Shown here piece after piece: positions 1-56,700 of a stretch of DNA of 64,000 nt (positions are counted from its first letter, which is position 1; every line of letters starts with the position of its first letter). This DNA comes from Tubulanus polymorphus. Lineage: Eukaryota > Animalia > Nemertea. The translations under genes were made by a program, and so were the position numbers. Location: positions 6,360,914 through 6,424,913 of the forward strand of contig NC_134034.1 of NCBI RefSeq assembly GCF_964204645.1, in the 5' to 3' direction. The notes beneath the pieces are model-generated. The model saw nothing but the letters and a program-made list of their open reading frames with translations. It did no database searches and was not told the DNA's origin.

Positions 1-2234
1 AATGTCTTAAAGCATGATCTTCAAAGAAAGTGAAACATTAATTAGTCAGTTGAGGTCTAATTTCATTGGAAGATGTATTCTTTAATAAAATCTGTAAGAA
101 GTGTGTTTACCGATCTAAAGGTTGCAACCAATGTGAGGTATGTTCTGGTAATTCTAACAGTGTTACTCCATTTTCTCTTGCCAGCTCGACCAATTCAAGA
201 AAATTGTGGCTGTTATGTCCATCGGATATCAAAATCTGTGGACGAGCCGCTCCAATAGTAGGTAAAAAATTTTTCTTAAACCAAATCGTTGCAATTCCCT
301 GTTGAAATCATGAATACATGAAATTTGACAATGCTTTTCACTTCAGGAGCCTGATTCAAAATGTGACTGACAACTAATTACCTGTTTCGTCCAACCACTC
401 TCCGATACAGAAACTGTCGTACCTGCCGGTGCGTTCATTGTGTCAACTGAGAGTAATGATGCTGCCGTCTTGCCCTTAAAAATAACGTTAGGGGCCAGCA
501 TCTGCCCAGCAGCATTTCCACATGCCATGATCGTAACTGTTTCGCGATTGCCGCTGATTCGAGATTGAACATACTTGCTCCCTTTTCTGTAAATAAGAGT
601 TTTGAAAATAAAATTTTCATCGTTATAACGTTCATTCCTAAATCTGTTGTTTTATGACTGTGGTATTGAGTTTCTGTATCTGGATGATTGCTGATAGTCG
701 GAAATTAAAAATACTTCAACAACTCATTAGAATATTGCTGGGCTTAATAACTTGGGTTTGATAAGGGCTATTTATAGACCAACAGTTGAAGTATTTAAAT
801 GATAGGCTAATTTAGTTCAAAGCCTACCGTGCAACAATTTTTCCGGGGACATGAGAAAACTGAACGCCAGTTTCATCGAGATTCCAAATATGCATCGGTT
901 GAGCATTTAGCAATACTTTTGTGGCCGATCTAAAGAACATTCCAACCTTCTTAACATTCATGCACTGATGTCGGATTGCCGCAGTGCCCTCTGGCTTTCG
1001 GAGTGCAACAGTGGGGTTTCTAGTTTTAAAGCCAGCCCAGAACTGGTCACTCGGGATAATCTAAAAGTAAAATATATATACCAGTATTAATTATAAGGGA
1101 TAAACAACAACCTTTTAGTGAAAATCGTTGGCCTACCTGTTTAAATGGTGTCCCCCTTTTTAAGGCGAGATCACCCGCATATTTCAATAGATTTCCCTTT
1201 GAAAAACCGTAACCGAGGTCTGCACGGTTTTTCGCGAAATCCGCAAGTTTTGATTCATCTGCCTCAGACAGATTCGTCGGTCGACCTAGTTTCCTTCCTG
1301 CAGGAATTTTCCCACTTATTCGGTCATGTAATGTTGATTTTGGTACGCCAAAGTTTTTTGCTGCCGATAATATTGACATCCCATTCTGAACAGCCTCAAC
1401 AGCTTCACCCATTTGCACTTCTGTCCAACGCCGATACACTTTTGACATACTTAAAAATAAAAAACATTGTAAATATCATGTTGATTATAAAAATAATAAT
1501 AAAATGAATTCATTTTCTTTTATAAATAAGCCTTAATTATTTTCCTTAGTAAATATCATCACATGTTATTAGTTACAACCTGATCTCAGAATGGCATTTT
1601 CATAATTTAGGCCTACTGATAACTGTGTTATGGAGACTAGGTTATAGGCCTAGGCTCTGGGGCTAAAATGATGAATCAATTTGCATTTGTTTTCAGTATG
1701 CACTTTTTTGTGACAGTTATCTCAGAAAAAGGCCTGTTTGATGATAGACTACCGAGAAAACACACACAAATACCATCTATCCGAAATTACGTGAACGAGC
1801 CAGAATAACCGGGTATACGATATCCGAAATTATGTGTAGGCGAGCGAGTTTCTAAAAATCGCTGATATTTCATCAATGACCGTATTCCAATAGCGAATGA
1901 ATGTTTATAAACAAACTTTTTACTTCCTAGAACTTCTTAGTAGTGTTTACATAACAGCTGGCCGCGAAATGCCGTAAAAATGGGGCAATCAATAATGTAC
2001 TTACATGACCGATTTTTATCTCCTGCTTCGCTGGTTTCGTGTGCCGGGAAGAAATGCGTACTACGTCATCAAAACGGCGCGGATTTCCGTGGAATTCCCA
2101 GGAAATACCAACCTACCTCCCCTTTTTCAAATTTAAGCTCGTCCGAATAGGTATTCCCTCTACGCGACTGCTGAGAGGCCGTAGAAGAAAACTTCCGAAA
2201 TTACGTGGTCTTCCGAAATTACGTGGAGTTACCC
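1..2234 (-). mobile_element. pogo/Fot-like DNA transposon (5' half)
   Basis: Terminus read on - is TA|GGGTAACTCCACGTAATTTCGG (TA at 2235-2236). Subterminal repeats CCGAAATTACGTG occur at about 1781, 1823, 2194 and 2212. Encloses the transposase above. Confidence 0.8.
111..1448 (-). CDS. pogo/Fot-like DD35D transposase (psq-type HTH + CENP-B HTH + DDE_1), spliced, 3' end outside window
   Basis: Exons 1448-1137, 1060-828, 586-382 and 298-111 all have GT-AG boundaries and join in frame: [46 protein letters not shown]... WNLDETG... [12 protein letters not shown]... ISDGHNSH...[12 protein letters not shown]. There are 35 residues between the 2nd and 3rd catalytic Asp. No stops or frameshifts in the visible part. 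Confidence 0.9.
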
Positions 2235-2728
2235 TATATGTGTGCCACAGAGCAATCGTCCGTTCTCACTAGAGCCTAGCTGTGATGAGTGGTGTCTCGA
2301 CCTCTCGACCTCTGATCTGAAAACGCCATCTTCTAATTACTGGAGCATTATTTTGTAATTGTGAGTGTAGGCCAATGAATTTATGGCATTTGATCAGGAT
2401 TCGTGTATATTTTCGTACTTAATACAGATATAGTGTCCTTTACGCGAACCCCCTGTGCGTCCTCATTTTGCAAAATCGGATTTTACGTAAATTTCATATC
2501 ATTAATTCAGTCAGGTAGACCTAAAATGATTAACCTTAACCTGTTTTGTTTTTGTAATTTCTATATAACTATCTATATTTTGTATTTTGTATATTTCAAT
2601 TTTGTAAATCTTATTGCTAATGTTTTCATGGGTAACCGAGCCTATTGTACTAATACTTAAGGTAAAATAAGACAATTGATTTCGTCTTTAAAAATACTTT
2701 TTTCAAGAAATATCGAAATTATTCTTAC

Positions 2729-4348
2729 CTGTTTAACTTTGGGTTGATCGTCACCAAACATCTTCATCACAGCTTTTAATACTTTCTTGTAATCTTTCTT
2801 TCTCTTCCCATATATTAATACGAATACAAGAGGGATCTGTTTGATGTTTTTCCCAGATCTGACGAACGAATGAATACTAAAAAGCTTGGTAAATGGCCGC
2901 CTGACGTCCATGTACCAACGTTTGCTGCCCTTCAGAATATCGACCTGCTTCTGTGTTGCAAATACGAGGTGTCTCCTGTCATCTGAAAAAAATATTTAAT
3001 CTATGATGAAACCAGTAGAAAATACTACGATTCGCTTGATTTTTTGAAAGCCGATTATGTTCAAGTTTGTTTCAGTTATTTACTCAAATTAATGATTGAA
3101 CGAGAATGCTAATAGACCAATACTTACCGACCGAAATATCTTTCCTGAAAAACCCGTCGGCAATGAAGTCAGTTTCCAACTGAAAATGCAAATCATTCGG
3201 GTGATCGGGTCGCTGGCCTTGTCGCGCTCCTTTGCCCTGTCTCGCCAGATTTTCGGGAGCTGGAACAGAATCAATGGCCATGTTTTCGTCGGTGACCTGT
3301 TCACGCATCACCTCCTCTACGATTGCCGCAGCTGATCGAAAGACATTTTCTTTCGCCCGTTTTTTCACTTCTGTGCTAATCCTAGCAGCTACTGCGACAC
3401 CGGCGCCTAAAAGAACAAAAGTTCATTTCAATTACAATTAGGGTCAGAAAACTGCATTCATTTGTATTTTCCATTGCGTTTCAAAAACTTTCACTTTCCG
3501 TGCGCCGCCCTCAAAAAAAATCAAACTAATATGATAAATCTAATGAACTCAAGTTATCTGCCTACCTGGAGGATGATTGTGCTCCGAAAGTCTCGAGTAT
3601 TCCGTGGCATTCTGTAGGCCTATCGATCAAAGATGCTTTGCAATTTATGAGTTTATTTCTAACAGAGCACCTCCAATGAACTGTTGAATTAGTTGCACGT
3701 TTCTTTGTGTATGAGAAGCCCAGCGAATCGAACAATTTGTCTTGTCCTCTCTGCGAAGAAGATGATACCTGAAAATGGGAACATTATCATATATAAATCA
3801 AAATTATAAATCAAAATCAAAATACTCATCTTCATTCAACGTAGATATATAGATGAAGCAATTTATGAGTAATTTTGACAAAATACCTTGCTGTATGTAA
3901 TTTCTTCCTCGTCTTCGACTTCTCTGGGTACAGGGTCTCTGATCGAAGATTCATCAAAATCCATTGGCTCTTCAACCCCTCTGGGTACAGGGTCCCTGAT
4001 CGAAGATTCATCGAAATCCATCAGTTCTAATATCGATGGTTCTCGTACTGGTGGAAAGGCATCATCAGTTGACAAGCGAAGGCTCGCCCTCTGGGCGGCT
4101 CCAGTCCCCAATGATAACCGTGTACTTTCTGCCTGGGGAATCGCTGGCAAAGTCCCCTGTAGACGGCAAGGAATGCACTTTCACGGAATGTCCTTGCCAC
4201 TTTTCACTGCTTCCCTGTACGTTTCTCGGGTGATTCCAGTCTTGCAGATTCTGTGCTGCCATTTCCCGCAATCGTCGCACAATATACCCTCTTGCCTTGG
4301 TCTGACTTCCTTCTCGCAAGAAATACATGTAGAATCTCTGGAGGCCAT
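2729..4348 (-). pseudogene. PHD-FLYWCH-MULE transposase pseudogene (Phantom-like Mutator)
   Basis: Exon 4348-3887 encodes a PHD finger (CISC..CDDC..WQHRIC..*KCIPC) with TGA at 4181-4183. Exon 3768-3566 is FLYWCH-like (WRC..C..HNH) with a +1 frameshift. Exon 3406-3128 follows. Exon 2982-2729 is the MULE N-terminal part, where WYMD-VRRPF lacks the usual GTFK after the first Asp. Truncated downstream. Confidence 0.85.
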
Positions 4349-5629
4349 AATAATCGCTGTTCTCAAGTCGTTGTTATCGCTTTAGCAAAATGCTGGATAG
4401 TGATGACCCACAGAAAAATCAAGGGGTTTATATACTTCTGCAGTTCCAATGGCAAACTAATTAGTCAGGATCAATCAAAATTCCAATCTACTCACCAAAC
4501 AGATCAGTTTCTTTCTTAATTAATGATTAGTTCGATTAATAATTAGTTCTGATTACCGTTCATCCGTTCACGCATATGGAACAAAACTTGAATAGATTGA
4601 ATTCATTTCATAATTTCATGATTTTATTTTGAACGTTTCAAGGATGCTTGCGCTATAGGAGCTAAAGTTAAAGCTTTGAACCAAAATAAACCATTTAATG
4701 TTTAAATGTCGGGCCACCATCCGGTCTTCAGATATTGTATATTTAATGATACAAGACATCAAGAGTAAGAAATGATCAAAACTAAACCAAAATCGAACTG
4801 GATCAGGACAAAAATGACACATTTCTTTTGTTGCCAGTCATGAAATTACGTAAGAAATACCAAAAACACAAAATAATGACGGCCGAGTGACCAATTATAC
4901 ATACACACACAAAAGTGAATCCATATGGCCGAAAATAATACCGTTCTTCCTATGGCAAGTGATTTTTGGTTCAGATAAAGAAAGGAGATTAGAGAGCAAA
5001 TAAAGAATAAGGAACGGGAAAGTTAACGAACGTTTTGTTCCTTTATTAGAGATTAATGTAACGATCAGTACCGTAATAAAAAGTTTACTGACATTCAAAA
5101 TGTTCAATCCCACCATGAGGTTTAACAAAAAGTTGTCAGTTTAATTATAATAATAATAAATAAGTCTTGATGGTGTAGGTATGCTATAAAAACAGTTCAG
5201 ATGCCTCAAGTAAATTATTCCTCTAGTGATTATAACATGAACGCCTTTATCATAGATTACACGTCCATGATTTTATAATTGACTACTAGTTGTCAGTACC
5301 GCTCTGCCCTCTGAGTAAGTGCTGACTACTTTTCTACAATCTCATTCGTTCACCTGTGTTTGTTGATTTAAGAAACAATGTGAATTAGTCCAAGCTAACT
5401 GAAATCAATCATAACAACTAACTAATTACATAATTTCCTGATTTAAGAAACAATGTATATAAATTAGTTCTCCAAGCGAACTGAAATCAATCACAACAAC
5501 TAACAAACTAACAATTAATTCCTTTGACGTTATAATAATGATTAAGTTTATTTTCAAAAGAAATTAACAAAATGCAAAAATATCACGTTAAGATTTTCTT
5601 CCAATAGATGACAAAATTTTGTCCGTATT

Positions 5630-5717
5630 ATACATCCTCCCCCGGCAGGGATTCGAACCTGAAGCATCGCTAATCTCGATGTCATCAGGTACGAATCCCT
5701 GCCGTGGGAGGATGCAT
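5630..5717. repeat. ~88-bp hairpin made of two inverted Pol III B-box-containing arms
   Basis: ATACATCCTCCCCCGGCAGGGATTCGAACCTGA...TCAGGTACGAATCCCTGCCGTGGGAGGATGCAT. The arms are reverse complements. Confidence 0.7.
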
Positions 5718-5954: not shown

Positions 5955-6770
5955 CATTATGAGTTTTCCGGTTTGCTCGGCTACCCGTACTGGCGGGGTA
6001 GTCTAGAGAGGCCAATGAAAACTCCGGTTTGCTAAACCACCCCTCTTTGCGGGGATGCGGTATGATGTTTGATCTGACAGTTTCATGTGGTTAATGGCTG
6101 TTTCAAGTGCTTACAACGATGCTTATTACTTCGTGGTACATGGTGGTTTAAAAAAAGATTTCATAATAATACGCTCACCGCGTGGGCTTCGTGGAAAGAC
6201 CACTACCTGTGACCTTCCCAAATTTTAATTGTCCTGTCCGATTTGGTTTCATCCAATTCAGAGACTGCCTTTTCCAGTTAGGGCATTTTTGGATCACGTC
6301 ACTCCAGGAAAGGACTTAACGCTTTTGGGCCCCTTCGTCGGTTCCACATGTTTCATTTGAGCTATAGACCACAATGGTGACACCATGATGGTCAGTAACT
6401 GACCAATTGAGATATCCCCGAGTCTGAACACTTGACTTCGAATTTCGGAAATTTATCATGTAATGTTTGTTTTCAAACTACTAAGGAATCATCATTGCAA
6501 ATTCATCACTGACCATCACTGACCACCAATGACCAATTCAAACTTCTCGAATATGAAAACGATATACCGCGTTATGGTGTCAAACTAGAAAGGATTCGCC
6601 ATTGAAAATTCATAAATTGACCATCACTGACCACCACTGACCAATTGCAACTTCTTGAAAGAACGATATACCGGTACCGCATTTGGTGTGAAACTAGAAA
6701 GGATTCGCCATTAAATTTCATAAATTGACCATCACTGACCACCACTGCCCAAGTGAAACTTCTCAAATAT
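5955..6770 (+). mobile_element. CATTATGAG-family element, subfamily 2
   Basis: 5955-6368 is nearly identical to 63586-64000. Starts CATTATGAGTTTTCCGGTTTGCT followed by a hairpin. Internal ~110-bp tandem units with GACCATCACTGACCACC occur at about 6500-6770. Confidence 0.75.
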
Positions 6771-12039: not shown

Positions 12040-12099
12040 AACATCCTCCAAAGGCGTACTCTTTTATGACCTCCGAAGTCTCCGTCAGAAATCTCCGGT

Positions 12100-12300: not shown

Positions 12301-15300
12301 TACTATGGACATTTCGAAAATGAAGGTTTGTTGATCGTTTCTTTCGAATCCTCGAATCCTTAGGCCTATATTTCCTTTCCTATTTTACCACCTATACAAG
12401 CTCCTGTATTTTTCATTCCGGATGACTAAATTCAGTCATAACCAGAAAAAGTACCATTAACACGGGTAGGCCTAGTCTTGTGTAGTAGTCTTTATATGGT
12501 ACCTAATTCAATTCAATATTTTATTGGAAGTGCATATTTTCATTTAAATCACGATTTAGGTATAGCAATACCAACTACGAGGTATATGTTGCCTAGAGAT
12601 GCAAATTCTGTAAAATTTGCTCTCCTTCAAGCACAAAATATGTTCATCTGATAAATAAATCCTCATTTTGAACAAAATATTGTCGAAGTGGATATTAAAC
12701 CGTGGCCTATGGCAAAGTATTTACTTCCGCTCTTTTACCGTACATTATTACTATATATATAGTATTAACTAATAGAATTAACAATTAAATCATTATATTG
12801 GGTTTAAGGTAGTCTAATGTCTATTTCAACCTGACTTGAGAGCATTCCTGGTGGCCTAGCTCAGTCAGTTTTGGTAGTACATACCTGATAGAAGTCTTAT
12901 TAGGAACAGAATGCATTGGCATATGACCTAAAATATCGTTTTTTAATCCACTTTAAACTGTATTGAAGGATATCCAGAAAATCTGCATTGAGAGGGGTTC
13001 CTGAGAGAAAAGAGACTCCATGATTTCAAAGTTTAACAATATGTCTCCATGCCTACCAAGTGAAGTTTGGTACGTAGGCATGGAAACATATTGTTAAACT
13101 TTCAAATCCTGGAGTCACTTCTTTTCATTTAACCCGTGGAGACTTTAAGGATATCCTTCAATACAGTTTCGAATTAATTAAAAAATGATGATTTAGGTCG
13201 ACTGCCTGTCCTTTCTGGTCCTATTAAGACCTTTGTCAGGTATGTCCCACCAAAAATTGGCGAGCTAGGCCACCGGAATGCTCTCAAGTCAGGTTGAAAT
13301 AGACATTAGTACCTAGCCGTTGTTCCTCAAACAATGTCTAGGGCGAAAGTGCTCATATAAGGTTAATTTTCGTCCCTCATTTTGAGGGATGAGGCTTTGA
13401 GCGTCTATTTCACCCCTTAGGCCTAAAGCACCCTCAACTTACCTCAAACTGACTGTTCTGTAATCAGATGGAAGTTAACTATTGTTTGTGCATAAATTTG
13501 TAATCCTAAGTAGCTCTGACGATCGTAGTAGCTCAAAACTTTTGACTAGTCACCTCAAAAATCAGTTGAAGTGAAGCACCATAACAAATATGGCGGCTTT
13601 TCGTGGTGCATGGTGGGAGTGTAAATAACAGATTCGGACTTAAACTTGGACTGACATTGATGCCAATGCAGATATCATTCTTGTTTCAAATACTTATGGT
13701 TAAAATTGACCAAAATTGATGCGCTTTATCAACAAAAAATAACATATAGAGTTATTTTAGAGAGATTTATTGAGTTTTCACATTTCATTCATTTAGTCCG
13801 TATTGGAAATCCCGATAGTGGCAATCACTACAATTCAAATCAAATCAATAAATTCTCCGGTTCGTGATTTAAATCATCAAAAATTTGGTAAGGTGAGGTA
13901 CTATAGATAGTTAAAACATTTGGGTGGTTTTCAGCGAGCTCGGTGGTTTAGTGGTATGACGCTGCGCTAGTAATTTACTGGCCCGGGTTCGAGTCTCGCT
14001 CTATTTTATCTATCCCTGATCTCCACACTCTACTTGAATTTTGGCTGATTTACACCGCACAGAGGTGCACGACTTTACGATTTAAGGATAGTGTGGAGCG
14101 AGATCAGAGTTCAATCAATTTGAATTCGATAAAATTGTCCAGATCGAGAGGAATTCGGACCTGGCCCAGCGTATTCCTAGCCCAACTTTTTTCCACTAGT
14201 AGACCACCGAGCTCCTTGCAATCCAAGCGTAAGTTTTAATTACATAGGCCTATAGCACTGAACCTTACCAGTCCCTATCCTTAGGGGTAAAATGGACCCT
14301 TACCCTCTAGACCCTAACCCTAACGAAACCCTGTCCCTAATCCCAATATAGTGATTTTATTGTTACTTTTATTAGTCCACTTGGGAATTTAGTCCCAGCG
14401 GGCTATTGCGTTCACTTTTCGTCCGTCGTCCATCCGTAGACGGAATCTAGCTATTTTGCTAAGTTTTGAAGACGCTTCAAGGTAATGTCTTGATATTTGG
14501 TTAATACATGTATCTACCCTAGACACATCTTCAGCCCAAAAACTGGCCCTGTCAGAATCAAGATGACCGACTGGCAGCCATTGTTGTTCGCCAAAATCAG
14601 CACTTTTTACATGTTTTTGAAATTTTTTAGGGAAATTTTGAAGACGCCTTGATCTTTCGTATATATTTGTAAATTTTAAAATTTAACGCCCCTCAGAGTG
14701 TCTGAGACAGAAAATCACACTGGAATTTATGAAAAGTCACAGATGGTTTTAATGCTGGACACCAAATATTACAATAAATCTATCAACGAAAACTGGGCGA
14801 ATGGCTCAGTTACTATGATGGTTGTCCATTTTTTGAAAAAACTGACGACGACCTACGCACTGGAGAGAATGAATGCATGAACACTTACATGCAGATTTTT
14901 TAGAAAATAAAGCGAGACGATTTTGAAGCGTAAAATCTATTTTGATGAAATCAAATGGTTTTGATGAAATCAAATGGGACATATAAGATATTTTACAAGC
15001 AACAGCGCCGAGGCGGCGCGGCGCGTAGTGAGAAGAACATGCCTCAACATGTGGCTTAGTTGTAGTTTTCCAGGAAACCAGGTACTAGGCACTTGGCCAG
15101 GGATATGAATACATTATCACACTCACGTTGAGGCTGACTATCACCGCTACATAAGACTTTGATGTGTTACCTTTACTCAGCTCAAAGAAAATCCTACTAG
15201 ATATATATGACACAATATCAATGATGCAGTCAACAAAAATGTATATAAACTTCATTTGTACATACATTTATTGATGATCCACAGATGCTAAACAAACTTT

Positions 15301-42300: not shown

Positions 42301-45300
42301 TCAAATGGGCATGGTGTCCCTGGACCCCAAATTTCTGATGACTGAGAATTATCATAAAGAAGTAAATCAATTTTGGGTTATGTTTGGTCCTGGTAAGACA
42401 TAAAAAGCAGATAAAGTGAAGTTATTTGAACCGTCCTAAAAATTGGGTATTAAATTGGTTAATATAATGATTCATCAGGTTCTAAGTAATCATATATTTT
42501 TTCTAGCTTGATGAAGAAACTCGTAAAAACAAACGCCAGGAACGATTTGGTAAAGATTTACAGGTATCTGCAACTGCTGATGTGCTTGGGGATAAGAAAA
42601 TAACCAAGGTAAATATCCAAAAGATGTGTTACTTTCCGTAAAAACCGGCGTATAAGTCTACACGGCGTATAAGTCGAGGTCGATTTTTAGACCTACATTT
42701 CATGATTTTAACATATATCCGGCTTATAAGTCGAGTCCCTTCTCTTAGAAGAATAATTACTGTATCATTGTATTGAATAGTTTGTTTTGATAACGATGTG
42801 TGCCTTCACGCACGCCACCGCGCGTCAGCCTGATTGCTGCTGTGTGTTAATCAATAGACTGTTACACACACTCAGGTATAATACACTACCATACAGTGAA
42901 ACAGTAGTGTGAGTCACACGCTATATATAGCCTAATGTATTAAGCGCTGCTATGAGCGCGCATATATAAATACATCATTTTAAATGAAGCTGTGTCAAAA
43001 TGAAAGAAGTTTTTTTCATTAAATAGCTTTATTTATCATGAATAATTATTGAAACTGTTATAGCAGTGAGAAGATGAACACTGTCTTTTTTGGCTGGTAG
43101 AATCAATATTTCTTGTGACCTGAAAATACTTAGTAGAAAACTGTACTCTGCTTATAAGTCGAGGTCAATAATTTAGTGGTAAAATCAAGGGTTAAAAACT
43201 CGACTTATACGCCGGTTTTTACGGTAAGGTTTAAAAGAAATCTCATTTCATGGACCGGCCAATGGTATTTGGTGAATATGTAGTAGTGCCCCCTGCCATC
43301 TATTTTTTGAAAAAACAAAGATGGCGCATGGTGGCTGTTTAATGATGTAGTGAATTTCATCTGAAAAACTTGTGATGTTTTTTGTGTTATTTTGAGGGGT
43401 CATTCAAAATGGCCGATTTTGCGTACAGAAGGGGAAAAATTCAAATTTTATGCGTACGTAATTAATGAATGATCCCTGATGAAATTTAGTACAGCCATTT
43501 GGTACAGCTAAAGTTTGTATTCGCTATTTATTCTTGGATGAAATCAGATGTCAGCCATTTTAGCATCCATCTATGAAGTGAATTTAGCTTGAACAACTCT
43601 GCTTAGATATTTCATTGTATTTTGATGAAATTTGGTACACATATTAAGCATGGTATGAAGTTGTAGGCTTGCTCTTATTTTCTATTTTTCAATAAAAGAT
43701 AGCTGATGGATGGCCAGTTTCGCATGTATCCATACAGTGAATTTTGTGAGGCAACTCTCTTAGATCTTTTTTTTTTTATTTTGATGGAACTTGGTAAAAC
43801 TATTTGCTATGGTGTGCAGTTGTACACCTGTGATTTACCTTAGAAAAGATGTAAGATGCTTGACTGGCAGAATCTTTAATTGTATGATTTAAATTATGAC
43901 TCTGATATTATTGCAGTCTTCGTGGCGAGGATGGTGGCAATGGCAGTCTTACCAAATGCTTTAACCCTTTCAGTACTGGCCATATTCATATGTTATAATA
44001 CTGAGATGATTTTTCGGTAAAACTAGTGTCTGCAGTTAACTTAGCATTACTCAGAAACTACTCAACCTATATAAACAAGCTATACACCAAATTCGAGATA
44101 TGAATCAGGGCTACATTTCAGAATAAGTTTTCCATGGTTCAGATTGGTGTGTTGAGGTCATGTGACCAATGTCAGTCATCTTGGATTTGAAATTACCATG
44201 TCTATGTAAAGATTGAGAAACATTACCCCCTAAACCTACTGAAACAAAAAAATTATTACTATCTGTACTCATCAATACCTTCAAAAACAGATTATCTCTC
44301 TCCTAAGGCCATATCAGAGCAATTCTCGCCGTTGGAATTCAATTGAATATCATCTTTACGCTTCACTGACTGTTAGTCTCCAATTCGGTGCCATTTTGCC
44401 TTTTGTTTTACCACAAAACTTGTCAAAAGTTCATAAAACCTTTAAATTCACTCACAAAATCTACCGGAGCACCACCTGGTAGATGTTTACTACCACCAGG
44501 AAGCGTTCAAATACAATAGGATTCGAGTCCCGACATAATAATCTAACGTAAAGTGACCCCTTCGGGGAATGGGGTGTGTATATTCTGTATATGTTTTACT
44601 GGCTTTCCAGAAGGGGGTGCGTACTGAAAGGGTAAGTTAGCGAAATTGCTCAAGGTTTACCTTACTAAGGTGTAATAGAGTGGGAATGAGACTGTGATCA
44701 TTAATTTTGTCAGTTTCGTCATCCATTTCGCCATCTATTTCACTGGCTTCCTCCGATGGATTTGACAACTCTAAAAGGTCATTAGTTTTCCATCTGTCCA
44801 CAGATGGAATCTTATTTTGGGAAGTTTTGAAGATGTTTCAATGTATTGTATAAGTGTTGAGATCCCATTTACCGTATTTTCCGGTGTGCAAGTCGACCTG
44901 GTGTATAAGTCGAGATCAAAAAAGGTTAGTTTGCTGTAATTCGAAACATCAAAGCAACAATTCGATGATACATTTTTGATACACCTGTTTCTTATAATCA
45001 TTGAATCAATTTACCCTTCTGGCATTTTACCTCTGGCATTTTTACCTCTGGCATTATTACCACGGCATTTTTCCATCGTACCATACTAAGGCTATAGGCC
45101 TAGTCGGTGTATAAGTAAGGTCCCTTCTTCACGTGTTTACATAAGTCACTTTTGAAAACAATGCTATGGTCATTCTCATAGTAGTTGAAAGTCTTTACCA
45201 TTGCAATTTGCAATTAATCATAAGGATCTGTTGTTTCTGATAGTAAATTACTGGATTCCTGCTCATTGGTTGTATCCACATGTTGAATGTATTGTGTATA

Positions 45301-46277
45301 CATTGAATGCTGCGCACCTGTAGTCTAGTATTAGATTGCTGTACACTTATTGATTATTGGCACGCTGCCATAGCAGCGCGGCTTATATAAAATGCTGTAC
45401 AATGATGATACACGTGCGCGCTCTTCTTTCTCATTTGATTTTTAACATCAGTTATTTCGAACCATTTCCAAACTATAAGAAACTATTTTGTCACCATTCT
45501 GAACTCTAATTGGTATATGAGTGTAGCCTAACATAAATTAATATTCCATTTCATCATGGCAACTTTGAAAAATTAAACATCGTCAGTTTAAATGATATGA
45601 AAGTGTATTCAGTATATAAGTCGACCTACTTTTTTGAACATGATTTTGGTCTCAAAAACTCGACTTATACCCCGTAAAATACGGTATCCCGATTCAGAAG
45701 CATCGAAGTCAATGCCTTCTCTGGACTGGTGTGGGATACATGTGTACTTATTTCCTCTGACACCTATTCTAGAGAGATTTGTCAATTAAATCTTGTTATC
45801 GCTTGTCAAGATTCAAAATATTGAAGATGGTAGATACCTGGTAACCAGGATACAACACTATCTCAATAAGACTCACGACGTCCCTCCCTGCTCTTCATTC
45901 ATTGCTGGAGTCTGCATCACCTAGTCTGTGCTGTCTTTTGGTTTCGCGCTACCAACCTCATTATCTGTCTATTATTGATACACTGAATCATGACATGTAT
46001 TTTCACAAATTTTACTATGATATTATAGATTGATGATCAGGGGAAACTTGAAAAACGTAAAGAGAGATTTGGAATTACAACAGGTAGTGGAGATGCTGCA
46101 TCACTCGACGTGGCGATGGATAGAAAACGAAAACGTGCCGAACGTTTTGGACTCATAAATTCTCCAGGATCTGAAAATGTTCCAAATTCTTCTGGTGGGC
46201 TGGTAAATGCCCCGATATCTTCGGAGATCGATGAGAAAAAGCGTAAACGAGCCGAACGATTTGGTGGAATTGCGTAA
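12293..46277 (+). CDS. SARNP: SAP domain-containing ribonucleoprotein (SARNP/CIP29/Tho1), 336 aa, 9 coding exons
   Basis: Exons 12293-12325, 22086-22203, 23426-23502, 26692-26846, 27608-27668, 28112-28258, 40637-40705, 42507-42608 and 46029-46277 are all GT-AG with consistent phases (1011 nt). The protein has the SAP domain MATTMDISKMK|IAELKKELKERGLSMSGNKSDLQERL, an acidic linker, repeated RxxRFG motifs and the C-terminus KKRKRAERFGGIA*. Confidence 0.95.
12815..13308. mobile_element. Nearly fully palindromic TA-flanked MITE (family P1)
   Basis: Ends TAATGTCTATTTCAACCTGACTTGAGAGCATTCC and GGAATGCTCTCAAGTCAGGTTGAAATAGACATTA, with ~245-bp arms. Other copies at 59057-59290, 60001-60409 and 60446-60726. 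Confidence 0.9.
13309..13886 (+). mobile_element. Repeat B with 30-bp hairpin H (13309-13338)
   Basis: TAGGGCGAAAGTGCTCATATAAGG... aligns in reverse complement to 59480-60002, 58800-59058 and 54490-54663. Confidence 0.8.
13886..14270. mobile_element. Inverted-repeat element whose two arms each contain a tRNA-derived head
   Basis: Arms TGGTAAGGT..CTATA..TTAAAAC..GAGCTCGGTGGT(T/C)TA. The left arm has A box TGGTTTAGTGG and B box GGTTCGAGTCT (13986-13996). The right arm carries a degenerate copy on - (about 14147-14214). Confidence 0.65.
14367..15830 (+). mobile_element. Helentron-type non-autonomous element HINE1, interrupted (14367-14670 + 15612-15830)
   Basis: 5' stem TAG(T/C)CCACTTGGGA..AGTCCCAGCGGGCTA and a GTCC microsatellite. 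Body matches 19672-20785 and 25175-26340. Confidence 0.8.
15520..15610. mobile_element. hAT-like element end inserted in HINE1
   Basis: Repeated GCAGGGC subterminal motifs ending GAGAACACTG (CAGTGTTCTC on -). The partner end was not identified. Confidence 0.4.
16027..16802 (+). mobile_element. Non-autonomous PIF/Harbinger derivative with MADF remnant
   Basis: ~40-bp TIRs AGGCTGGCTTATGTCGACAAGCAACGCGACGCCTACCGAC and a 3-bp AT-rich TSD. 16415-16540 encodes frameshifted DWTEDLETKLVELWCERPSL.DVASTLYS.., a MADF/Myb-like ORF2 remnant. Confidence 0.8.
17560..17977 (+). mobile_element. HINE1 3' fragment with ~154-bp tandem units
   Basis: Three units containing GGTCACCAGGGG(G)C, ending CATGGTGTCCCTGGACCCCTAGTT. 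Confidence 0.8.
18149..18278. mobile_element. Short Harbinger-like MITE
   Basis: TIRs GGGCCAGTTGCTCAAAAGTTGGT and ACCAACTTTTGAGCAACCGGCCC. Confidence 0.7.
19440..21463 (+). mobile_element. Helentron-type element HINE2 with ~143-bp tandem repeats
   Basis: subTIRs TAGCTCCGCTGTG and CACAGCGGAGCTA, GTCCGTCTGT microsatellite, T-run flanks. Units CAGTTTTAATCAGATCAATTCCAAATTTGG at about 19599, 20843, 20987, 21129 and 21295. Confidence 0.85.
19672..20785 (+). mobile_element. HINE1 full copy nested in a T-run of HINE2
   Basis: subTIR CCCACTTGGGA / TCCCAAGTG. The host repeat resumes as TTTGGATTCGTCCCC after the insertion. Confidence 0.9.
23982..24243. mobile_element. Penelope-like inverted pseudo-LTR palindrome with degenerate hammerhead-like cores
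   Basis: ~125-bp inverted arms. The left arm on - reads CTGACGA-TGATCTCTAGGGCGAGATA-GAAACGTCG, followed by an AATAAA-type signal, as in PLE termini. Confidence 0.6.
25175..26340 (+). mobile_element. HINE1 full copy
   Basis: GCCCACTTGGGA...TCCCAAGTGGGCATGGTGTCCCTGGACCCCTAGTT, with GTCC microsatellite and ~154-bp units. Confidence 0.9.
26402..26509. mobile_element. 108-bp palindromic MITE with CTG TSD (Harbinger-type)
   Basis: GACCCAGTTCCACAGTTCTGAGTTA and TAACTCAGAACTGTGGAACTGGGTC, flanked by CTG on both sides. Confidence 0.8.
26900..27067. mobile_element. Tc1/mariner-like MITE right end
   Basis: Repeated TATAAC(G/A)A motifs ending GAGGTTCCACTG|TA. Confidence 0.5.
28400..29365. mobile_element. 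Two adjacent foldback/MULE-like MITEs
   Basis: First: GGGGGATTTT repeats at 28738-28780 versus AAAAATCTCCC at about 28403. Second: AAAAATGTCCC repeats at 28790-28870 versus GGGACATTTTT at about 29331, with inner inverted similarity. Confidence 0.5.
29486..30705 (+). mobile_element. HINE1 near-full copy (inside another GTCT-microsatellite element starting ~29370)
   Basis: Matches 25175-26340. Four tandem units and an intact 3' end. Confidence 0.9.
31451..32026. mobile_element. PIF/Harbinger-type MITE, TAA TSD, GGCC...GGCC termini
   Basis: TAA|GGCCATCCCA..GTCTGTTTGCCG ... CGGCAAACAGAC..TGGGATGGCC|TAA, with GTCGG subterminal repeats. Confidence 0.85.
32987..33573. mobile_element. TA-flanked CCGT-terminal (Tc2/pogo-like) MITE
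   Basis: TA|CCGTAAAAACAGGCGTATAAGTC ... ACTTATACGCCAGTTTTTAAGG|TA. Highly similar to 42636-43224. Confidence 0.9.
35119..35337 (+). mobile_element. tRNA-derived SINE
   Basis: A box TAGCTCAGTGAG, B box GGTTTGAGTCC, 3' tail GATGTAAAGCCAGACAAACAAACAA. Confidence 0.7.
36780..37040 (-). mobile_element. HINE-type element 5' end
   Basis: On -: TTTTTAGCTCTCGAGGAACGAGAGGGCTATT stem followed by GTGTCGGCATCG..GTGTATGTTT. Confidence 0.5.
37400..37490. repeat. ~23-bp tandem repeat x4
   Basis: Units AAA(A/T)TCTC(A/G)(A/G)CAGTG(AA/GT)TTT(A/G). Confidence 0.7.
38184..39046 (+). mobile_element. Internally deleted hAT-like element with 6-bp TSD
   Basis: TIR CAGAGATGCTAG / CTAGCATCTCTG, TSD ACTAAA (38178-38183 and 39047-39052), TTCCGGAA subterminal repeats. 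Confidence 0.85.
38639..38940 (+). pseudogene. Truncated transposase N-terminus with BED-like zinc finger
   Basis: KNKFNWHWL...AYCVVCEDQVKYGSGGKKDILRHPDSARH (C-x2-C...H-x5-H). The catalytic region is deleted and the ORF runs into the right TIR. Confidence 0.7.
40768..41100 (+). mobile_element. piggyBac-like left end(s) with acidic N-terminal transposase remnant
   Basis: TTAA|CCCTT at about 40764 and 40850. Frameshifted MATARKKQF..VQQLVYDVDSDAGDLEFGSEQIESDNEYDS. Confidence 0.45.
41780..42330 (+). mobile_element. Diverged HINE1 3' fragment
   Basis: Degenerate tandem units ending TGGGCATGGTGTCCCTGGACCCC. Confidence 0.75.
42636..43224. mobile_element. CCGT-terminal MITE, second copy
   Basis: CCGTAAAAACCGGCGTATAAGTC...GACTTATACGCCGGTTTTTACGG|TA, located 27 bp downstream of SARNP exon 8. 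Confidence 0.9.
43965..44632. mobile_element. piggyBac-type MITE
   Basis: TTAA|CCCTTTCAGTAC ... GTACTGAAAGGG|TAA. Confidence 0.75.
44872..45684. mobile_element. Related CCGT-terminal MITE containing a foldback-like fragment (~45010-45082)
   Basis: TA|CCGTATTTT..GTATAAGTCGA ... TCGACTTATACCCCGTAAAATACGG|TA, with internal CTGGCATTTT(T)ACC repeats. Confidence 0.8.
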
Positions 46278-50344: not shown

Positions 50345-50706
50345 TAGGCCTAGCTACTTTTTGCTATGGCCCGAAACTTCATTCACTCTATGGACGCACA
50401 GTGAACGCAGATTCTACCAAAAAACGATTTTTTCCTCGAACTTCATAGATGCCCAATTTGTTTTTACAATGAAAAACATTCCTTTTTCACCAATTTCAAC
50501 TAGTCAGTTGCTATTAGTCAAAAACTGATTTATTAAGTCATGATATGAACTTCAATAAAACTATCACAGACTCCTATACTTCCATATAATCAAATAGAAC
50601 ATGAATTTCAATTAAACATATATTTACATTCTGCTTTTTCATTTCATTTAGATTTTAAAAATAAATACATGTAAATGTCAATAAGACACATAATATTCCT
50701 TACAGA

Positions 50707-53700
50707 TTAATAGTGCGATAAGTATATAATTGTATGTTTTTCAATCATTTCAATGTCCCTTTCGAGTTGCTTCATTTCTGCTTCCATACGCTCTTTGCGA
50801 TTTTTTTTCGGGGCTGTGTCTGTAACAACCGATAATCCTTGATATTGATGATGCAGTTCCTCCCAGTTAGTTTTCAGCCCATCTAGGATCCCCTGTCTTT
50901 CATATTCTTCAAGTTTCCGCATCGCCCCACGTCGGAAATGTTCAGACACATAGTGGTCATATTCTTCCTGTGCTTTCTTTATCTCGTCCTTACGTTTGGA
51001 CAGATAGAGCGGCGTTTTACCAAAGTCCTGTTTAATGCAAGAGAACATCTTAAATGCGCAAATTGAATTGGAAATACAAATTGGGACTCAGATATAATGA
51101 AGTGTTATCTGACAATGACTTAACCAGTTCACTGTTTTAACAAATTTAATTCGTTATTTCAAAGCATGCGAGAAGAAACAATGTCCAAAACTTGCCATTA
51201 AGAGTCTACACATTATCAATCATAATCATGTTGTCATAACCGAGAATTCAATACAAATTACTTCTACCCACAAATTTGAAAGCATATGTACACTACTAGT
51301 GTCAAAACAATGGATGGCGGAGGGTCCCGTAACTTAACACAGTCGATGAAGTATTTAATTAACTCTGCCTGCCAGGCCTATTTTTCAGGAAATGCTGCGC
51401 TTTGCCAGGATTTCAGTGTTTTTCAGAGATTCATAAAACAAAAACTAAAAGGGAAATCATCAAATTTGTTTATTTTGTTCATCTGGTCTTGCTTTTTCAT
51501 GCAAAATAAGCAGCATTTCTTCAAAAAGTGATAAAATCTGCAGCTATTACCAGAGCAGAGGGGGTATTTTGAATAAAATATGCCCATTCATGCGTGTTCA
51601 GACCCCATTTCAATAGATGACGTCACTAACACACCACATAGAACGACTGATGTTTGTTTTAGTAGTAAAAAAGGCATTAAACTAACTGGTGTTGTGCAAT
51701 GAATTTGCCATCTATTGTTAAAGTTAAAAAACAAGTCACCCATACCAGTACGTTTTTGGCAGGCAATGAGTTAAATTGGTCTCAAATAATTATACTATGT
51801 CGTGGGCAGGTAATGTAAGTTAATGTAAGAAAATGGGACTGCACTTCTCGCAACATTTTCAAATTTTGGACAAATTCATAGGCCTTTCATTCAAGTATTT
51901 CAAAACGATGATCATCATATAGCTATCATCTGTTTTTTGATGTTTTGATGTTAGTGCAGCGGCCATGTATATCTTCAAAAAGAAGCTTAACAATTACCTT
52001 TTTATTTAGATATTTAGGTACCAATCCAGATGGTTCCAGTGGACGCTTATCCCCACATTTTGTGTCTACATAATTCATTTCCGGCTTTTTTGGCACGGAC
52101 ATGATATTTTCAACAGCATTAGTGGTGATGAAGTTTTTGGTTGTCCGAAGGCCCATCACCGGTCTGTCATCAGGTTTCGGTACAGGTGGTTTCCTTGAAT
52201 CAGTATATTTGAATTCACTCGCTGAATTGAAAAAGTAGAGTATTTGTTGTGACATATCAATACAAAATGGATAGTTATTGGTTTTTTTATCATTTAAATC
52301 TGAATTAACCCTACGAAACAGGCAGCCCTTTTATTACAATCGGAGTGCCCAGGGTCAATTTTAGAATCATTACAGCAGCAATTCAGATACATCTACACAG
52401 AAGGTTGAACAACTGAAACAACTTTAGTGAAGAATAAAAACTTTTCGCAAAATGACGACAAACAGACCAAACAGCTGTCGAAATGAACTGAATATAAATT
52501 TTGTTGCCATTTACAAAATGACCTGGCCAACAAGGAGAAACGGCATCATTTTTTAGCCTTAGTCTATCAAACTGCTATGCTGAAAATGAATATATCTAGT
52601 GGAGTAGAAATTATAGTAGTCCTCCAGAAATTGACTGAATTTTTCAAGCAAGGGCAAACACATGCTGGTCACATATCATGAATATTGGCACCACCTACCA
52701 AAAAAACATATAGATTGAAAGAGGAACTGAAACCGTTGAAGAATAGTCAACCCCCGATGTACCGCCAATATTGGTGCAGAACGAGGGAGGGCATAATATC
52801 GGGGTTGACTGTTTAGTTTCATAGGATTTAATCCATTGGGAACACTTTTATTGCCTTAATTCACAATGCCCTTTGTTTAGTCTAATTAGGCTTGTCACTA
52901 GGAAAAATGCATGCAACATGTAGGCCTATAGGGTTAAATGAGTTCTACCACCACCAACAAGTGAAAAGACATAACACTGGTAGGCGCTACTTACATTCAG
53001 GGAGTCTTGGTTCCTTTTCATGTTTCTTGAGGAACTGGTCAGTTGTTGGACAGTCAACCTTTGCAGGTCCCATCGTTTTATATGACCCTTTGTTAGCGTT
53101 GTACTCATCTTTTGCTAAGGTCTTAAACTTCGAAATATGTCTAGAAAGAGAGGGAGAGAATTAGTTCATCAATCTATTAGTAGGACTTGGGATCCAGGGC
53201 CACTTGGGGAAGTGGTTTGAGACGCTCAACAAACAGAAAATTTCAATATTCAATGCCCCCTGGTGAACATATTAAGAAAGCAACATTTGACCATAAAACT
53301 CACTACACTCACAATTGATTGTGGTTGCAAAATATGAGTAGGTAACAATATAATATGAAAATTATAAGACGGACGCAGAGCACCGAAGGTGCCCAGAGGA
53401 CGTCCCGTATATGTGGATACTTTGAAGTGTCTTTTTAACCGAATCTTACTTACTTAAAAATGACGTCACTTGACGTCCGGTTGGAAGTTCATGGGGAAAT
53501 CGAAAGTAGAATTATGTCACACTAAAATCAGGCAGCACATAAACTATAATACGGCAACCTTTGGATCGGGTGATATCAGTATTTATTCATTTTATGAAAT
53601 TTCTAGAAAAAGAATCAAATACGTATTGAAACATATCAATAGGAAAATTTTCTGCTAGAAAAAAAAATCAAATTAGCAGGAAATACGAATGTCAGTACAA

Positions 53701-56700
53701 AAATTGATTTCTCTCGCGAAAAATGAAACATTTGTTTCTAATCCTCCGGGAATATCGAGTACCGGGAATCTAGGGTTCAAAATAAGCAGCGCAGCAGTAC
53801 TTCAACAGTGGTACCGAGTTCCGTATTTGGTGAAGAAGGGGCGGAAATTGATGTTTTTGCCGACCACGATGTTGCTGCTACTCGAGCGAGACGCCATGCC
53901 GATCTGCCGCGCAATTTTACGACTCTTACGCGACTCTCACCAATTTGATTTAAAAAACTTATTTCAGTCCTGCGGCTAGGATCGTGCAAGAGCGTAATTC
54001 TCCAGGATTCAAACCTGCGCGCTGGCCGCGTTTGTTATCATGAATTCGCTCCCGTTGCTAAGGGAATTTCAGCTCGTTCAATCAACGCAGTTCATTGTTA
54101 AACTATTCATCGACCCAATCTTATTCTAAATTTCATTAAAATAAATAAATTCTGAAATAACCTGATCCATAAGTTACCGTATTTTAGTCAATCGGCTGCC
54201 TGATTTTAGGGTGACGTAATTCTACTTCCGATTTCCCCATGAGCTTCAAACCAGGCGTCAAGTGATGTCATTTTTTTCTGACTATGTCAGATAGGCCTAC
54301 TGTTTCTCACACATGCTCTCCATGCGACGTTTTGGTCCGTAGTTTCGTTAATAACCAGTTGATCTGTGAATATTATGCATGAATTTGTTCAGTTCAATTT
54401 TTAGTGCCAAATCAAACCTTTGTACTAAAATGAATAAATTAGTTACCTTGTTGACTTTGAAAACGTGTTTTATAATAATATTTTTATTGATTTAAATCGC
54501 GAACTGGAGAATTTATTGATTTGATTTCAATTGATTGCCATAATCGGGATTTTCAATGGACTAGATTAATAAAATGTGAAAATTCAATATGTCTCTCTAA
54601 AATTACTCTAAATTTTATTTTTTGTTGATAAAACGCATAAATTTTGGTCAATTTTAACCTTAAAAAATATAGCTGCAAAGCAGCGATAACGGGTTTTCTG
54701 CACAGTCTTAGAATCCTGTTCAACGGTGGATTTCGACAAAGCATTTGATAAGGCACAACATCAGCCATTACTAAACAGGCTATTAGGAAACAGTATCAAT
54801 GATAGGTCGCTCAAATGGCTCAGCAGTTATTTCTGAACGAAAACTTGTAGCTGAAATCAACAGAACATCTTGGAATAAGTCGGTCTAACTAGTGGTGTCA
54901 CGCAAGGTGGTATCCTAACTCGTCTTCTGTTTGATGTCCTGACAAATGACATAGGCCTACTCAGTAATCTAAAATATACCAGACCGAGTAAATGTCCAAA
55001 ACGACCTTAACACGCCGTTCGACCAAAAAACTTAATGTTCCGACAAGAAAATATTGTTCCAATGAAAACAATTCTGTTTGATCGAACAATACGCTTTTTG
55101 TTTGAACCAAAACTTTTCTTCATTCCGACAAAAAATGAAAACCTTTTTGTCCCGGAAAAAAATTTGGTTGAGCGAAAACAATTTTTTTAGAATGAATGTT
55201 TGAATGAAAACAATTTTGTTCGATTGAACGAAATACTTCATACTTTTGGTTCGGAGGAAAAACTTTTTACAATTTACTTGTTCGAACGAAAAACTTAATG
55301 TCCTGACAAGAAAATTCTGTTCAAATTAAAACGATTGTTCGAACAAAAAACCTTTTGTTTGGACAAAAAAAAATTCTAACAATTTTTTTCAAATTGGTTC
55401 AATCGAACGGAATATTATTGGTTCGAACGAAATAAATTTTGTTCCGACGAAAGAATTTTCAAGCGAAAGGTCTTATGAACTAAAAAAAAAGATAATTCTG
55501 GGGCTCCGCGGTAACTTAAAGCGGGACGTAGGTCGGCCATGTGACGCGATGCGATCCTCACGTTGCATCGCAAGTTTCGGTGCAAGTCGGTTGCGATACG
55601 ATTGTCAGTGACTGTGTGCGACTAGTTTCTGCCAGTCGCAAGAGCGCGTAGGTCGGTTGTGACAGTCGTGTAGCGTCGCAGAAAGTAGAACATGTGCGAC
55701 TCCTTGCGACTGGCGTTGCTGACAGTCGCAACCTGTCGCAAGAGCGCGTAGGTCGGTTGTGACAGTCATGTAGCGTCGCAGAAAGTAGAACACGTGCGAC
55801 TCCTTGTGACTGGCGTTGCTGACAGTTGCAACCCGTCGCAAGGGAGTGTAGGTCGATGAGTCGTTGCGACACAATCGTCGCTGGCGATCACTGTGAATGG
55901 TGTCGCAGTGAGTCACAAGCCGTCGCAAGGCCGACCTACGCCCTGCTTAAGTCATTAGGAATGAATGCGAATGAAAAACCAGTTTCATTTATCATGAAAA
56001 TACTCAAATGAGAAGTCTGGCTTATAAAGCTATCTGCTCAGACGAAATTTTCAAAAAAAATCTTCATTTTTGGCAATAAAATTGATAATTGGGATTGATT
56101 GTTGCAAGTCAGAACCAGTTAATCACTAATTAACATGCATTTTAATAAATCTGATTCCTCCTATACAGTGAACTTAGCATTAACCTAGTAGAGGCTACTA
56201 GCCTATGTATAGGCCTAACATCTGGACAGATTGGCCGTAGGCCTATTAAATAACAACCCTCCTAAATATCGTAAATTTTGTTTTGAAGTTCAACCCAATG
56301 AGTCCTTTAATAAACGCAACAATAATACTGTGTTTGTTTGAGACAGTAAAGGTCAGTGCCGGTAGGCCTAAAGCCTTAAGGTCGTGTAAAACTCGATAAA
56401 CACTTCAAGCGACACAGCGAACGATCTCCTTTCCCCCATGGCGAACGCTTACTCTGAATGTCAAGTGTGAGTCCAGCATACGGATAGGAGTGTGTTATAT
56501 ACTTGTATTTAGTAAATACCTTGTGCATTTGACAATGATCTGTATGTACTGTAGGAAATATAGAGTATTGATGGTATTGATTTAGAGGTTGAGGCCTGCG
56601 GCCGAATTAAGTAATATATTCTTTTTTTGTTACCTCGTCGACACAACAGCTTTTCTCCGCTATATCTCTTCGGCGTGTTTAGTTTAGGCCTGCGAGTCCC

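Follow-up and report, generated by a model that had tools for sequence, protein, structure and literature searches.

The 8-mer TAGGCCTA, which is strongly over-represented in the genome of the nemertean Tubulanus polymorphus, is most likely the excision footprint of TA-integrating transposons with GG...CC termini, belonging to the pogo group of the IS630/Tc1/mariner superfamily. The best candidate parent is pogoGG, a low-copy element of which one copy lies at the left edge of the window, i.e., the whole 64-kb stretch of DNA that was analyzed. Comparisons of filled and empty sites, the termini of pogoGG, and the distribution of scars around its copies all point in this direction.

Excess of the palindrome and gain of GGCCTA at TA

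The window contains 23 copies of TAGGCCTA, and every one of the 23 coordinates given in the initial annotation is exact. Its estimate of less than one copy by chance also agrees with dinucleotide-preserving shuffles, for which 0.58 copies are expected (maximum of 3). Under an order-2 Markov model, TAGGCCTA is the top 8-mer of the window by z-score, and the flanks of its copies there show no mutual similarity. Genome-wide (268 Mb), the word occurs 21,141 times, compared to 3,384 times for the reversed control word, confirming the excess over background and corresponding to a surplus of about 18,000 scars. The genome mean amounts to 0.079 per kb, and the density in the window is approximately 4.5-fold higher.

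Related words were counted as well. Among the 16 palindromes of the form TA-NN-N'N'-TA, a clear excess is seen only for TAGGCCTA, TACCGGTA, TACATGTA, and TATATATA. The last of these is a TA-repeat word. The enrichment of TACCGGTA and TACATGTA points to a rule that holds for footprints in general and not to a writer specific for GGCC, and TA-flanked inverted-repeat elements ending in CC...GG and CA...TG occur in the sampled DNA. The 7-mers TAGGCTA and TAGCCTA are enriched in the window (15 versus 6.3 expected), in random DNA (34 versus 13.3), and beside pogoGG copies (19 versus 3.9). In the one attempt to trace this variant as an insertion at TA, an empty paralogue was not found.

The initial annotation had read TAGGCCTA as an insertion of GGCCTA at a TA, and this stands at most of the sites where a sister copy is at hand. 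The scar at 13418-13425 forms a clean 6-bp gap against two paralogues within the window, which carry a plain TA at 59922-59923 and 59009-59010. Similarly, the scar at 24002-24009 and, in addition to the cases originally listed, that at 23550-23557 appear as 6-bp gaps in the alignment, with a plain TA in the opposite palindrome arm at 24222-24223 and 24405-24406, respectively. The scar at 14245-14252, with moderate support, is probably a gain of the same kind: it lies in one arm of an inverted repeat, and the length of the second arm (TA at 13904-13905), 6 bp less, fits this, although similarity between the two is limited to 73%. The reading fails at 19648-19655. This copy is part of a tandem-repeat unit whose sister units (AAGGCCTA, AATGCCTA, and CATGCTTA) align to it without a gap, so no indel is involved there.

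The polarity of the change is apparent at L013:6552, where 74 paralogues carry a plain TA and a single repeat copy, represented by three near-identical duplicates, carries the scar. With 74 plain copies against a single scarred one, the insertion is the derived state, which contradicts the alternative of an ancestral motif deleted in the sister copies. A small derived insertion located exactly at the target, with the target duplicated, was found at the four window sites above and at L013:6552, in line with an excision footprint.

Two scars fall in coding-like frames. At 54952-54959, the scar extends a reverse-transcriptase-like fragment (plus strand) by an in-frame Gly-Leu, consistent with the two-codon gain described before. 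In contrast, the scar at 3615-3622, previously placed at a frameshift in a FLYWCH sequence, lies within an open FLYWCH-like frame of 73 codons on the minus strand, which it lengthens by an in-frame Arg-Pro. The scars thus constitute a recurring source of 6-bp gains, which contributed two codons to the reading frame in both instances.

Ten of the remaining window sites have unique flanks according to word counts and flank comparison (12361-12368, 12467-12474, 17242-17249, 18062-18069, 18285-18292, 28567-28574, 33872-33879, 50345-50352, 52921-52928, and 54292-54299). Another, at 45095-45102, lies within a TA-flanked element of 813 bp with inverted-repeat ends (44870-45686), which starts with CCGTATTTTCCGG. 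The copy at 56210-56217 is followed 28 bp further by that at 56238-56245, and the last one occupies 56363-56370.

The pogoGG element and the scars beside it

A copy of pogoGG, a 5.5-kb pogo-type DNA transposon, is represented at positions 1-2234 of the window (minus strand) by its right 2.2 kb, as identified by similarity to full-length copies. This copy runs on to the left of the window, where similarity is lost 620 bp short of the full-length left end. Four other copies, on C1, C2, C6, and C59, are 100% identical among themselves and share 99% identity with the window copy over positions 1-2236. Between its flanking TA dinucleotides, the element starts with GGGTAACTCC and ends with GGAGTTACCC (GGGTAAC...GTTACCC), and the terminal inverted repeats (TIRs) at its two ends agree without mismatch for 25 bp. 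In the window, the 25-bp TIR is located at 2210-2234 on the minus strand and reads GGGTAACTCCACGTAATTTCGGAAG from the outside in, with the exact TIR word at 2222-2236. It is followed by the TA target-site duplication at 2235-2236, directly after which the flanks of the five copies diverge. This TA is present at both ends of the four full-length copies and at the right end of the window copy. In addition, the C59 insertion has empty counterparts on C4, C7, and C8, each with a single TA.

The transposase gene lies on the minus strand and is interrupted by introns. One exon (1047-1448, minus strand) encodes an HTH_psq DNA-binding domain (PF05225, E = 2e-12), and another (110-298, minus strand; C10:6361023-6361211) encodes part of the DDE_1 catalytic domain (PF03184, 29.7 bits with a curated threshold of 22; profile positions 56-120). 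A second, weaker piece of PF03184 covers profile positions 2-56, and the matches are exon-sized, as in an intron-split gene. The TA duplication, the TIRs, and the N-terminal helix-turn-helix of the CENP-B/psq type place pogoGG in the pogo group of the IS630/Tc1/mariner superfamily. About 29 exact TIR ends were found genome-wide, and the copy number is about 15-20. The terminal bases of pogoGG, GG(G)...(C)CC, equal the inner bases of the scar, and the identical copies and empty sites mark the element as recently mobile.

Two of the 23 occurrences of TAGGCCTA, at 1608-1615 and 1645-1652, are internal to pogoGG (element positions 4844 and 4881). As both are carried by all copies, they are inherited and should not be counted as independent events, as had been done earlier. 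Both lie in the 5' region of the transposase gene and are kept in a subfamily with 82% identity, a conservation that could hint at a function.

Scars are concentrated around pogoGG. The flanks of four copies contain 20 TAGGCCTA in 32.9 kb, or 0.61 per kb versus 0.079 per kb genome-wide (7.7-fold, Poisson P = 7e-12). Their density reaches 1.17 per kb at less than 1.5 kb from a copy, compared to 0.29 per kb farther out (P = 0.002). In contrast, TACCGGTA (one occurrence) and TACATGTA (two occurrences) are not enriched in the same 32.9 kb, though both are enriched genome-wide. The scars are hence spatially associated with the donor copies through excess, distance decay, and specificity for the scar type. 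A scar located 163 bp from the C59 insertion is shared by the C4 and C8 copies, in which the element is missing, so it is older than this insertion. Part of the local excess is therefore due to repeated targeting and not to a trail left by the present copy.

Excision model and competing explanations

The proposal that TA+GG+CC+TA is the footprint of TA-targeting elements with GG...CC ends, put forward in the initial annotation, gains support from the pogoGG copy at 1-2234, the TA duplication relative to the empty sites, the 100%-identical copies, and the local scar excess. Under the corresponding model, integration duplicates the TA target. At excision, the transposase would cut exactly at the 3' ends of the element and, presumably, two bases inside its 5' ends, leaving each flank with TA and a GG 3' overhang. 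As two GG overhangs are unable to pair, end-joining would retain both, yielding TA-GG-CC-TA, so that the original TA gains GGCCTA overall. If one base were lost, TAGGCTA or TAGCCTA would result. The word TAGGGCCCTA, predicted for a three-base stagger from GGG ends, is absent in the pogoGG flanks even though pogoGG ends in GGG, so the model depends on a presumed two-base stagger. Occupied sites would in this manner turn into scars; no locus among those compared was observed in the empty, the occupied, and the scarred state alike.

We propose that pogoGG, rather than another GG...CC family, may have made most of the scars. It is a low-copy yet recently active element, and scars would have built up over a long time and preferentially in small regions that it revisits or hops within. 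About 29 exact TIR ends against approximately 18,000 surplus scars require either long persistence or further GG...CC families; a GG-ended miniature element was not encountered in the approximately 350 kb of DNA that were sampled. Given a mean age of roughly 0.08 substitutions per site, and assuming a typical mutation rate, the approximately 18,000 surplus scars would fit an ordinary rate of about 1e-5 to 1e-4 hops per generation for each copy. Neither the very high turnover nor the dedicated cut-and-fill process suggested earlier is therefore needed, given also that TACCGGTA and TACATGTA are enriched.

The footprints could also be real and yet stem mostly from another family, extinct or unsampled, such as a TA-target miniature element (MITE) ending in GG...CC, GGC...GCC, or GGCC...GGCC. 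This is a possible but not the favored explanation. The small copy number of pogoGG would fit it, as would the very uniform scar, since the 4-base self-complementary overhang of a GGCC-ended MITE would religate to a uniform TAGGCCTA. Further pogo families with intact frames of 740-775 amino acids and several identical copies each do exist, and the enrichment of TAGGCTA/TAGCCTA would be expected from GGC...GCC ends with a three-base stagger. However, no MITE with GGCC directly after the TA, or with other GG ends, was found in the window and about 290 kb of further DNA, and around pogoGG copies it is specifically the GG/CC scars that are in excess.

An element-free process dedicated to writing the motif, for instance a domesticated transposase or nuclease with a 2-base stagger at TA and templated GGCC fill-in, would account for the uniform product but is improbable. 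To our knowledge, no mechanism supplies an unvarying GGCC unless a template is given. An active element whose ends and target match exactly is present, scars concentrate beside its copies, and the parallel enrichment of TACCGGTA and TACATGTA fits other end types. Selection for TAGGCCTA as a cis-regulatory palindrome, such as the site of a dimeric factor, earns slightly less credence still. The internal pair kept in the transposase 5' region across 82%-identical subfamilies speaks for it, but sites arise by 6-bp insertion rather than by point changes and are found in decaying repeats, palindrome arms, and a pseudogene fragment of a reverse transcriptase, and one-mismatch variants are modestly enriched, in keeping with neutral decay. 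An artefact of the assembly or library, e.g., an adapter or linker remnant, can practically be dismissed, since transposon copies and subfamilies diverged by 18% have inherited the motif, which is also common to three segmental duplicates, has decayed variants, and always sits at a TA kept by paralogues.

Excision of pogoGG thus remains the preferred explanation. A more far-reaching version, which we consider rather doubtful, is that a pogo lineage of about 15-20 copies wrote most of the approximately 18,000 surplus TAGGCCTA, near a thousand per living copy, and persists by revisiting kilobase-scale hot spots. The internal pair could then mean that the transposase or a host factor recognizes the scar word, such that scars seed further visits. 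If so, the scar count would be a direct odometer for cut-and-paste activity as well as for germline end-joining.

Comparison with known excision systems

Excision footprints are textbook knowledge and have mostly been observed at individual alleles. The mechanism proposed here is classical, but very many scars stand against few living copies. One footprint word is so common that it can be read as a genome-wide record of DNA-transposon traffic, opening a route to the long-term rates of transposition and germline end-joining for a low-copy element. In practice, motif-enrichment analyses in T. polymorphus must discount TAGGCCTA and TACCGGTA.

In Caenorhabditis elegans, Tc1 and Tc3 leave footprints of TA + CA + TG + TA upon excision. 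In Sleeping Beauty and mariner elements, the stagger spans three bases and the overhangs are partly self-complementary, resulting in 5-bp scars (TACAGTA/TACTGTA); the dominant scar described here is, in contrast, a 6-bp gain. ISY100, a member of the same superfamily as pogoGG, shows exact 3' cuts and a two-base 5' stagger (PMC2170065). As for Tc1/Tc3 and ISY100, the TA target of pogoGG is duplicated and the scar consists of TA, two end bases per side, and TA. It differs in that the end bases are GG/CC, giving TAGGCCTA, that the stagger is a presumed one, and that the scar is known as a genome-wide word excess instead of single reverted alleles.

For Sleeping Beauty and mariner, footprints of nonhomologous end joining equal the overhangs, and local hopping leads to reinsertion preferentially near the donor (PMC7827188). 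The retention of overhang bases by end-joining repair would be a shared feature, and the clustering scale differs, being about 1.5 kb here. Within the pogo group, Passer leaves footprints of 0-4 bp (PMC9976928). Similar to pogo, Tigger, Passer, and Lemi1, pogoGG combines a TA duplication and short TIRs with a transposase that contains HTH_psq and part of DDE_1. However, it differs from them in its GGGTAAC termini, which are not of the common CAGT type, in its intron-split transposase, and in the combination of very few copies with very many scars. Finally, a comparison of rice species reports DNA-transposon excision footprints found genome-wide by cross-species alignment (PMC4423477). As in the rice study, genome-scale footprints appear here as a by-product of DNA-transposon activity; in the present case, one footprint word is frequent enough to be the top over-represented 8-mer of the region.

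Abundance of the scar palindrome and gains at TA

The palindrome TAGGCCTA (TA-GG-CC-TA, here called the scar) occurs 23 times in the window, exactly at the positions listed by the initial annotation, and dinucleotide-preserving shuffles produce a mean of 0.58 and a maximum of 3 sites, which agrees with its figure of fewer than one expected. No other 8-mer in the window is as strongly over-represented under an order-2 Markov model, and the flanks of the 23 sites show no mutual relatedness. The assembly holding the window (C10:6,360,914-6,424,913) comprises 268 Mb in 77 contigs. As the initial annotation had proposed, the palindrome was counted genome-wide against background, giving 21,141 sites versus 3,384 for the reversed control word. 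The excess is 6.2-fold and the mean spacing 12.7 kb; the density in the window is approximately 4.5 times the genome average. A random sample of 200 kb, taken from contig C1 only in pieces at even steps, contained 6 sites versus 1.27 expected. The excess is real and genome-wide, although some of the genome-wide counts are copies of a word-bearing repeat rather than independent events, since scar pairs with a spacing of exactly 267 bp are repeated at three C1 locations (915772/916039, 1162305/1162572, and 1349785/1350052). No precedent was found in the literature for TAGGCCTA itself or for a genome-wide excess of a footprint word.

Self-comparison of the window revealed clean 6-bp gaps at scars 13418, 23550, and 24002, with a plain TA in the partner each time. 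The empty partners are two paralogues for 13418 and the opposite palindrome arm for 23550 and 24002. The alignments thereby confirm the 6-bp gain at TA proposed for 13418 and 24002. For 14245, the proposed length difference of exactly 6 bp at a TA holds, but the two arms are merely 73% alike. A tRNA-like stretch at 13920-14000 (ggtggtttagtggtatgacgc...gggttcgagtc) is contained in an inverted repeat and could represent a SINE of tRNA origin; ARAGORN called no tRNA gene in the window.

The polarity of the change is settled outside the window, at position 6552 of the sampled locus L013, where a scar lies inside a repeat of ~520 bp. The scarred form is present in three near-identical duplicates, whereas 74 paralogues carry a plain TA (54 of them exact to a 25-base test word), showing that the gain is derived. 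At L013:6567, the one-base-shorter variant TAGGCTA was tested as an insertion, and no empty paralogue was found.

In reading frames, the scar at 54952 adds Gly-Leu to a reverse-transcriptase-like fragment, the two-codon gain described previously. The scar at 3615, which had been called a frameshift, is instead an in-frame Arg-Pro gain within an open FLYWCH-like frame. Other sites do not count as independent insertions: 19648 belongs to a tandem-repeat unit whose sister units read AAGGCCTA without a gap, and 1608 and 1645 lie inside a transposon and occur in every copy of it. Separately, an open frame at 50707-51048 (-) gives a strong match to the Enkurin domain (PF13864, E = 2e-31) and probably belongs to a host gene as one of its exons.

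A pogo-type transposon as candidate parent

The initial annotation had envisaged a full GG...CC element occupying a TA, and such an element, named pogoGG, has a copy within the window itself (1-2234, minus strand). A genome search with window positions 1-2300 returned four copies, 99% identical to the window copy and ending at window 2236. Extension of these copies defined a full length of 5,485 bp, with a perfect 25-bp terminal inverted repeat (TIR) and a TA flanking both sides (TA-GGGTAACTCC...GGAGTTACCC-TA). The open frame at 1047-1448 (-) contains an HTH_psq domain. Exon-sized matches to DDE_1 (PF03184) exceed the curated cut-off. On these grounds, pogoGG is assigned to the pogo group within the IS630/Tc1/mariner superfamily; introns split its transposase gene. 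Sequence identity among the four full-length copies is 100%. Only ~29 exact TIR ends exist genome-wide, corresponding to ~15-20 copies, including a subfamily of 82-84% identity.

Within pogoGG there are four copies of TAGGCCTA. Those at element positions 4844 and 4881 (window 1608 and 1645), upstream of the transposase start, match positions 2113 and 2161 of locus L008 and are kept between subfamilies. Their contexts of ~23 bp each are perfectly conserved, although the subfamilies are only 82% identical overall. These two may serve a function, or may be internal scars of great age.

Mobility is documented by an insertion at C59:24014-29502, on a contig of 60 kb. Its left flank is 100% identical over 3 kb to C4:5.84 Mb, and at C4:5843606, C7:11644616, and C8:2888392 the two flanks are found directly joined through a single TA, with the element absent, proving TA duplication and movement of pogoGG. 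This pattern suggests either heterozygosity of the insertion in the sequenced individual or a very recent origin; probably the insertion is heterozygous and located on a haplotig of a segmentally duplicated region.

Scars are concentrated beside the element. Flanking sequence of the four full-length copies, 32.9 kb in total, contains 20 (0.61/kb, as against a genome-wide 0.079/kb; Poisson P = 7e-12), where 0.55 would be expected from composition alone. The shorter variants TAGGCTA and TAGCCTA total 19 in the same flanks versus 3.9 expected. In contrast, the palindromes TACCGGTA (1 site) and TACATGTA (2 sites), which correspond to CC...GG and CA...TG ends, are not denser there than in random DNA, and the excess is specific to the GG/CC scar type. 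Scar density also declines with distance, from 1.17/kb within 1.5 kb to 0.29/kb at 1.5 to 6.7 kb (binomial P = 0.002). Local hopping is general in cut-and-paste elements (PMC7827188). However, a scar located 163 bp from the C59 insertion also occurs in the element-free C4 and C8 copies and is thus older than the insertion, so the association partly stems from the same small regions being targeted repeatedly, and not solely from scars that the present copy left behind. In a target-site logo built from 59 unique scars, the sole signal is a weak preference for purines at position -1, too weak for comparison with the few pogoGG insertion sites. The local excess and the derived gains at TA support the original reading of the scar as an excision footprint of TA-targeting GG...CC elements, with pogoGG as the likely parent.

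Further candidate parents

A further GG-ended family besides pogoGG may also have contributed scars, but a search for GG-ended MITEs in the window and sampled loci yielded no abundant family, and the half-sites TAGGCC and GGCCTA show no common extension of the TIR kind. An 814-bp MITE candidate at 60805-61618 proved to be just an inner portion of a longer 44-bp inverted repeat. An element at 60787-61636 measures ~850 bp; its ends are perfectly complementary over 44 bp, and it encloses a nested inverted repeat of 123 nt (61096-61218 and 61344-61466).

A perfect 32-bp hairpin, TAGGGTTTTCTGT...ACAGAAAACCCTA, lies at 57345-57376, 58719-58750, and 58770-58801. It numbers ~1,000 copies genome-wide versus 6-15 for its control, often forms tandem clusters at 51- to 60-bp spacing, and does not resemble a dispersed parent that targets TA. 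The first 100 copies listed all fall between 11.3 and 16.4 Mb on C1, a contig of 32 Mb, and on that basis the family may be confined to the central parts of chromosomes.

A second pogo-type family, with identical DDE_1 matches in open frames of 588-775 aa, occurs in at least eight places (C5:13121760, C5:13703936, C5:15953124, C7:10007561, C8:7361202, C10:7253516, C12:10201886, and C19:107553) and looks intact and young.

Excision, turnover, and relation to known elements

Transposases of this superfamily cleave precisely at the 3' ends of the element, whereas the 5' cut falls two or three bases within it, so that the donor flanks retain short 3' overhangs of element sequence, which end-joining converts into a footprint. 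A stagger of two bases is documented for ISY100 (PMC2170065), and one of three bases for mariner and Sleeping Beauty (PMC7827188). If pogoGG, with its GG...CC ends, is cut with a two-base stagger, each overhang would be GG and the two would be unable to pair; both would then be kept, giving TA-GG-CC-TA, and loss of one base would give TAGGCTA or TAGCCTA. The two-base stagger of pogoGG is inferred from the scar. TAGGGCCCTA, the product predicted from GGG ends and a three-base stagger, is absent from the pogoGG flanks.

One-mismatch variants of the scar in the window number ~14 above expectation, versus ~22 intact sites, which suggests, as a rough figure, that scars average about 0.08 substitutions per site in age. 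Assuming a neutral rate of a few times 1e-9 per generation, the ~18,000 excess scars correspond to about a few times 1e-4 fixed excisions per genome per generation, or about 1e-5 to 1e-4 per copy for ~20 copies. This lies within the ordinary range of DNA transposons, so the very high turnover proposed initially is not required; a low-copy element persisting for long suffices.

Among the 16 TA-NN-N'N'-TA palindromes, TAGGCCTA, TACCGGTA, and TACATGTA stand out in the window and the random sample; TATATATA is likewise in excess, but is a low-complexity TA-repeat word. TACCGGTA occurs 7 times in the window and, its CpG content notwithstanding, 12,039 times genome-wide versus 3,529 for its control, marking a second scar type that implies TA-targeting elements with CC...GG ends. 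A candidate is a TA-flanked 813-bp inverted-repeat element with such ends at 44870-45686. TACATGTA totals 20,353 versus 11,946 for its control, and locus L030 carries two TA-flanked inverted-repeat elements with CAGTA...TACTG ends. The enrichment of these words points to a general rule rather than the dedicated GGCC-writing process suggested earlier. Compound scars sharing one TA (TAGGCCTA+CCGGTA, TACATGTA+CCGGTA, and TACATGTACATGTA; C1:1635732-1635745, C1:513752-513765, and L029:2623) are expected if each scar creates new TA targets.

Passer, which like pogoGG belongs to the pogo group, leaves footprints of 0-4 bp (PMC9976928). The mechanism itself follows a classical scheme; the unusual features are that scars outnumber living copies roughly a thousand-fold and that they cluster at the kilobase scale.
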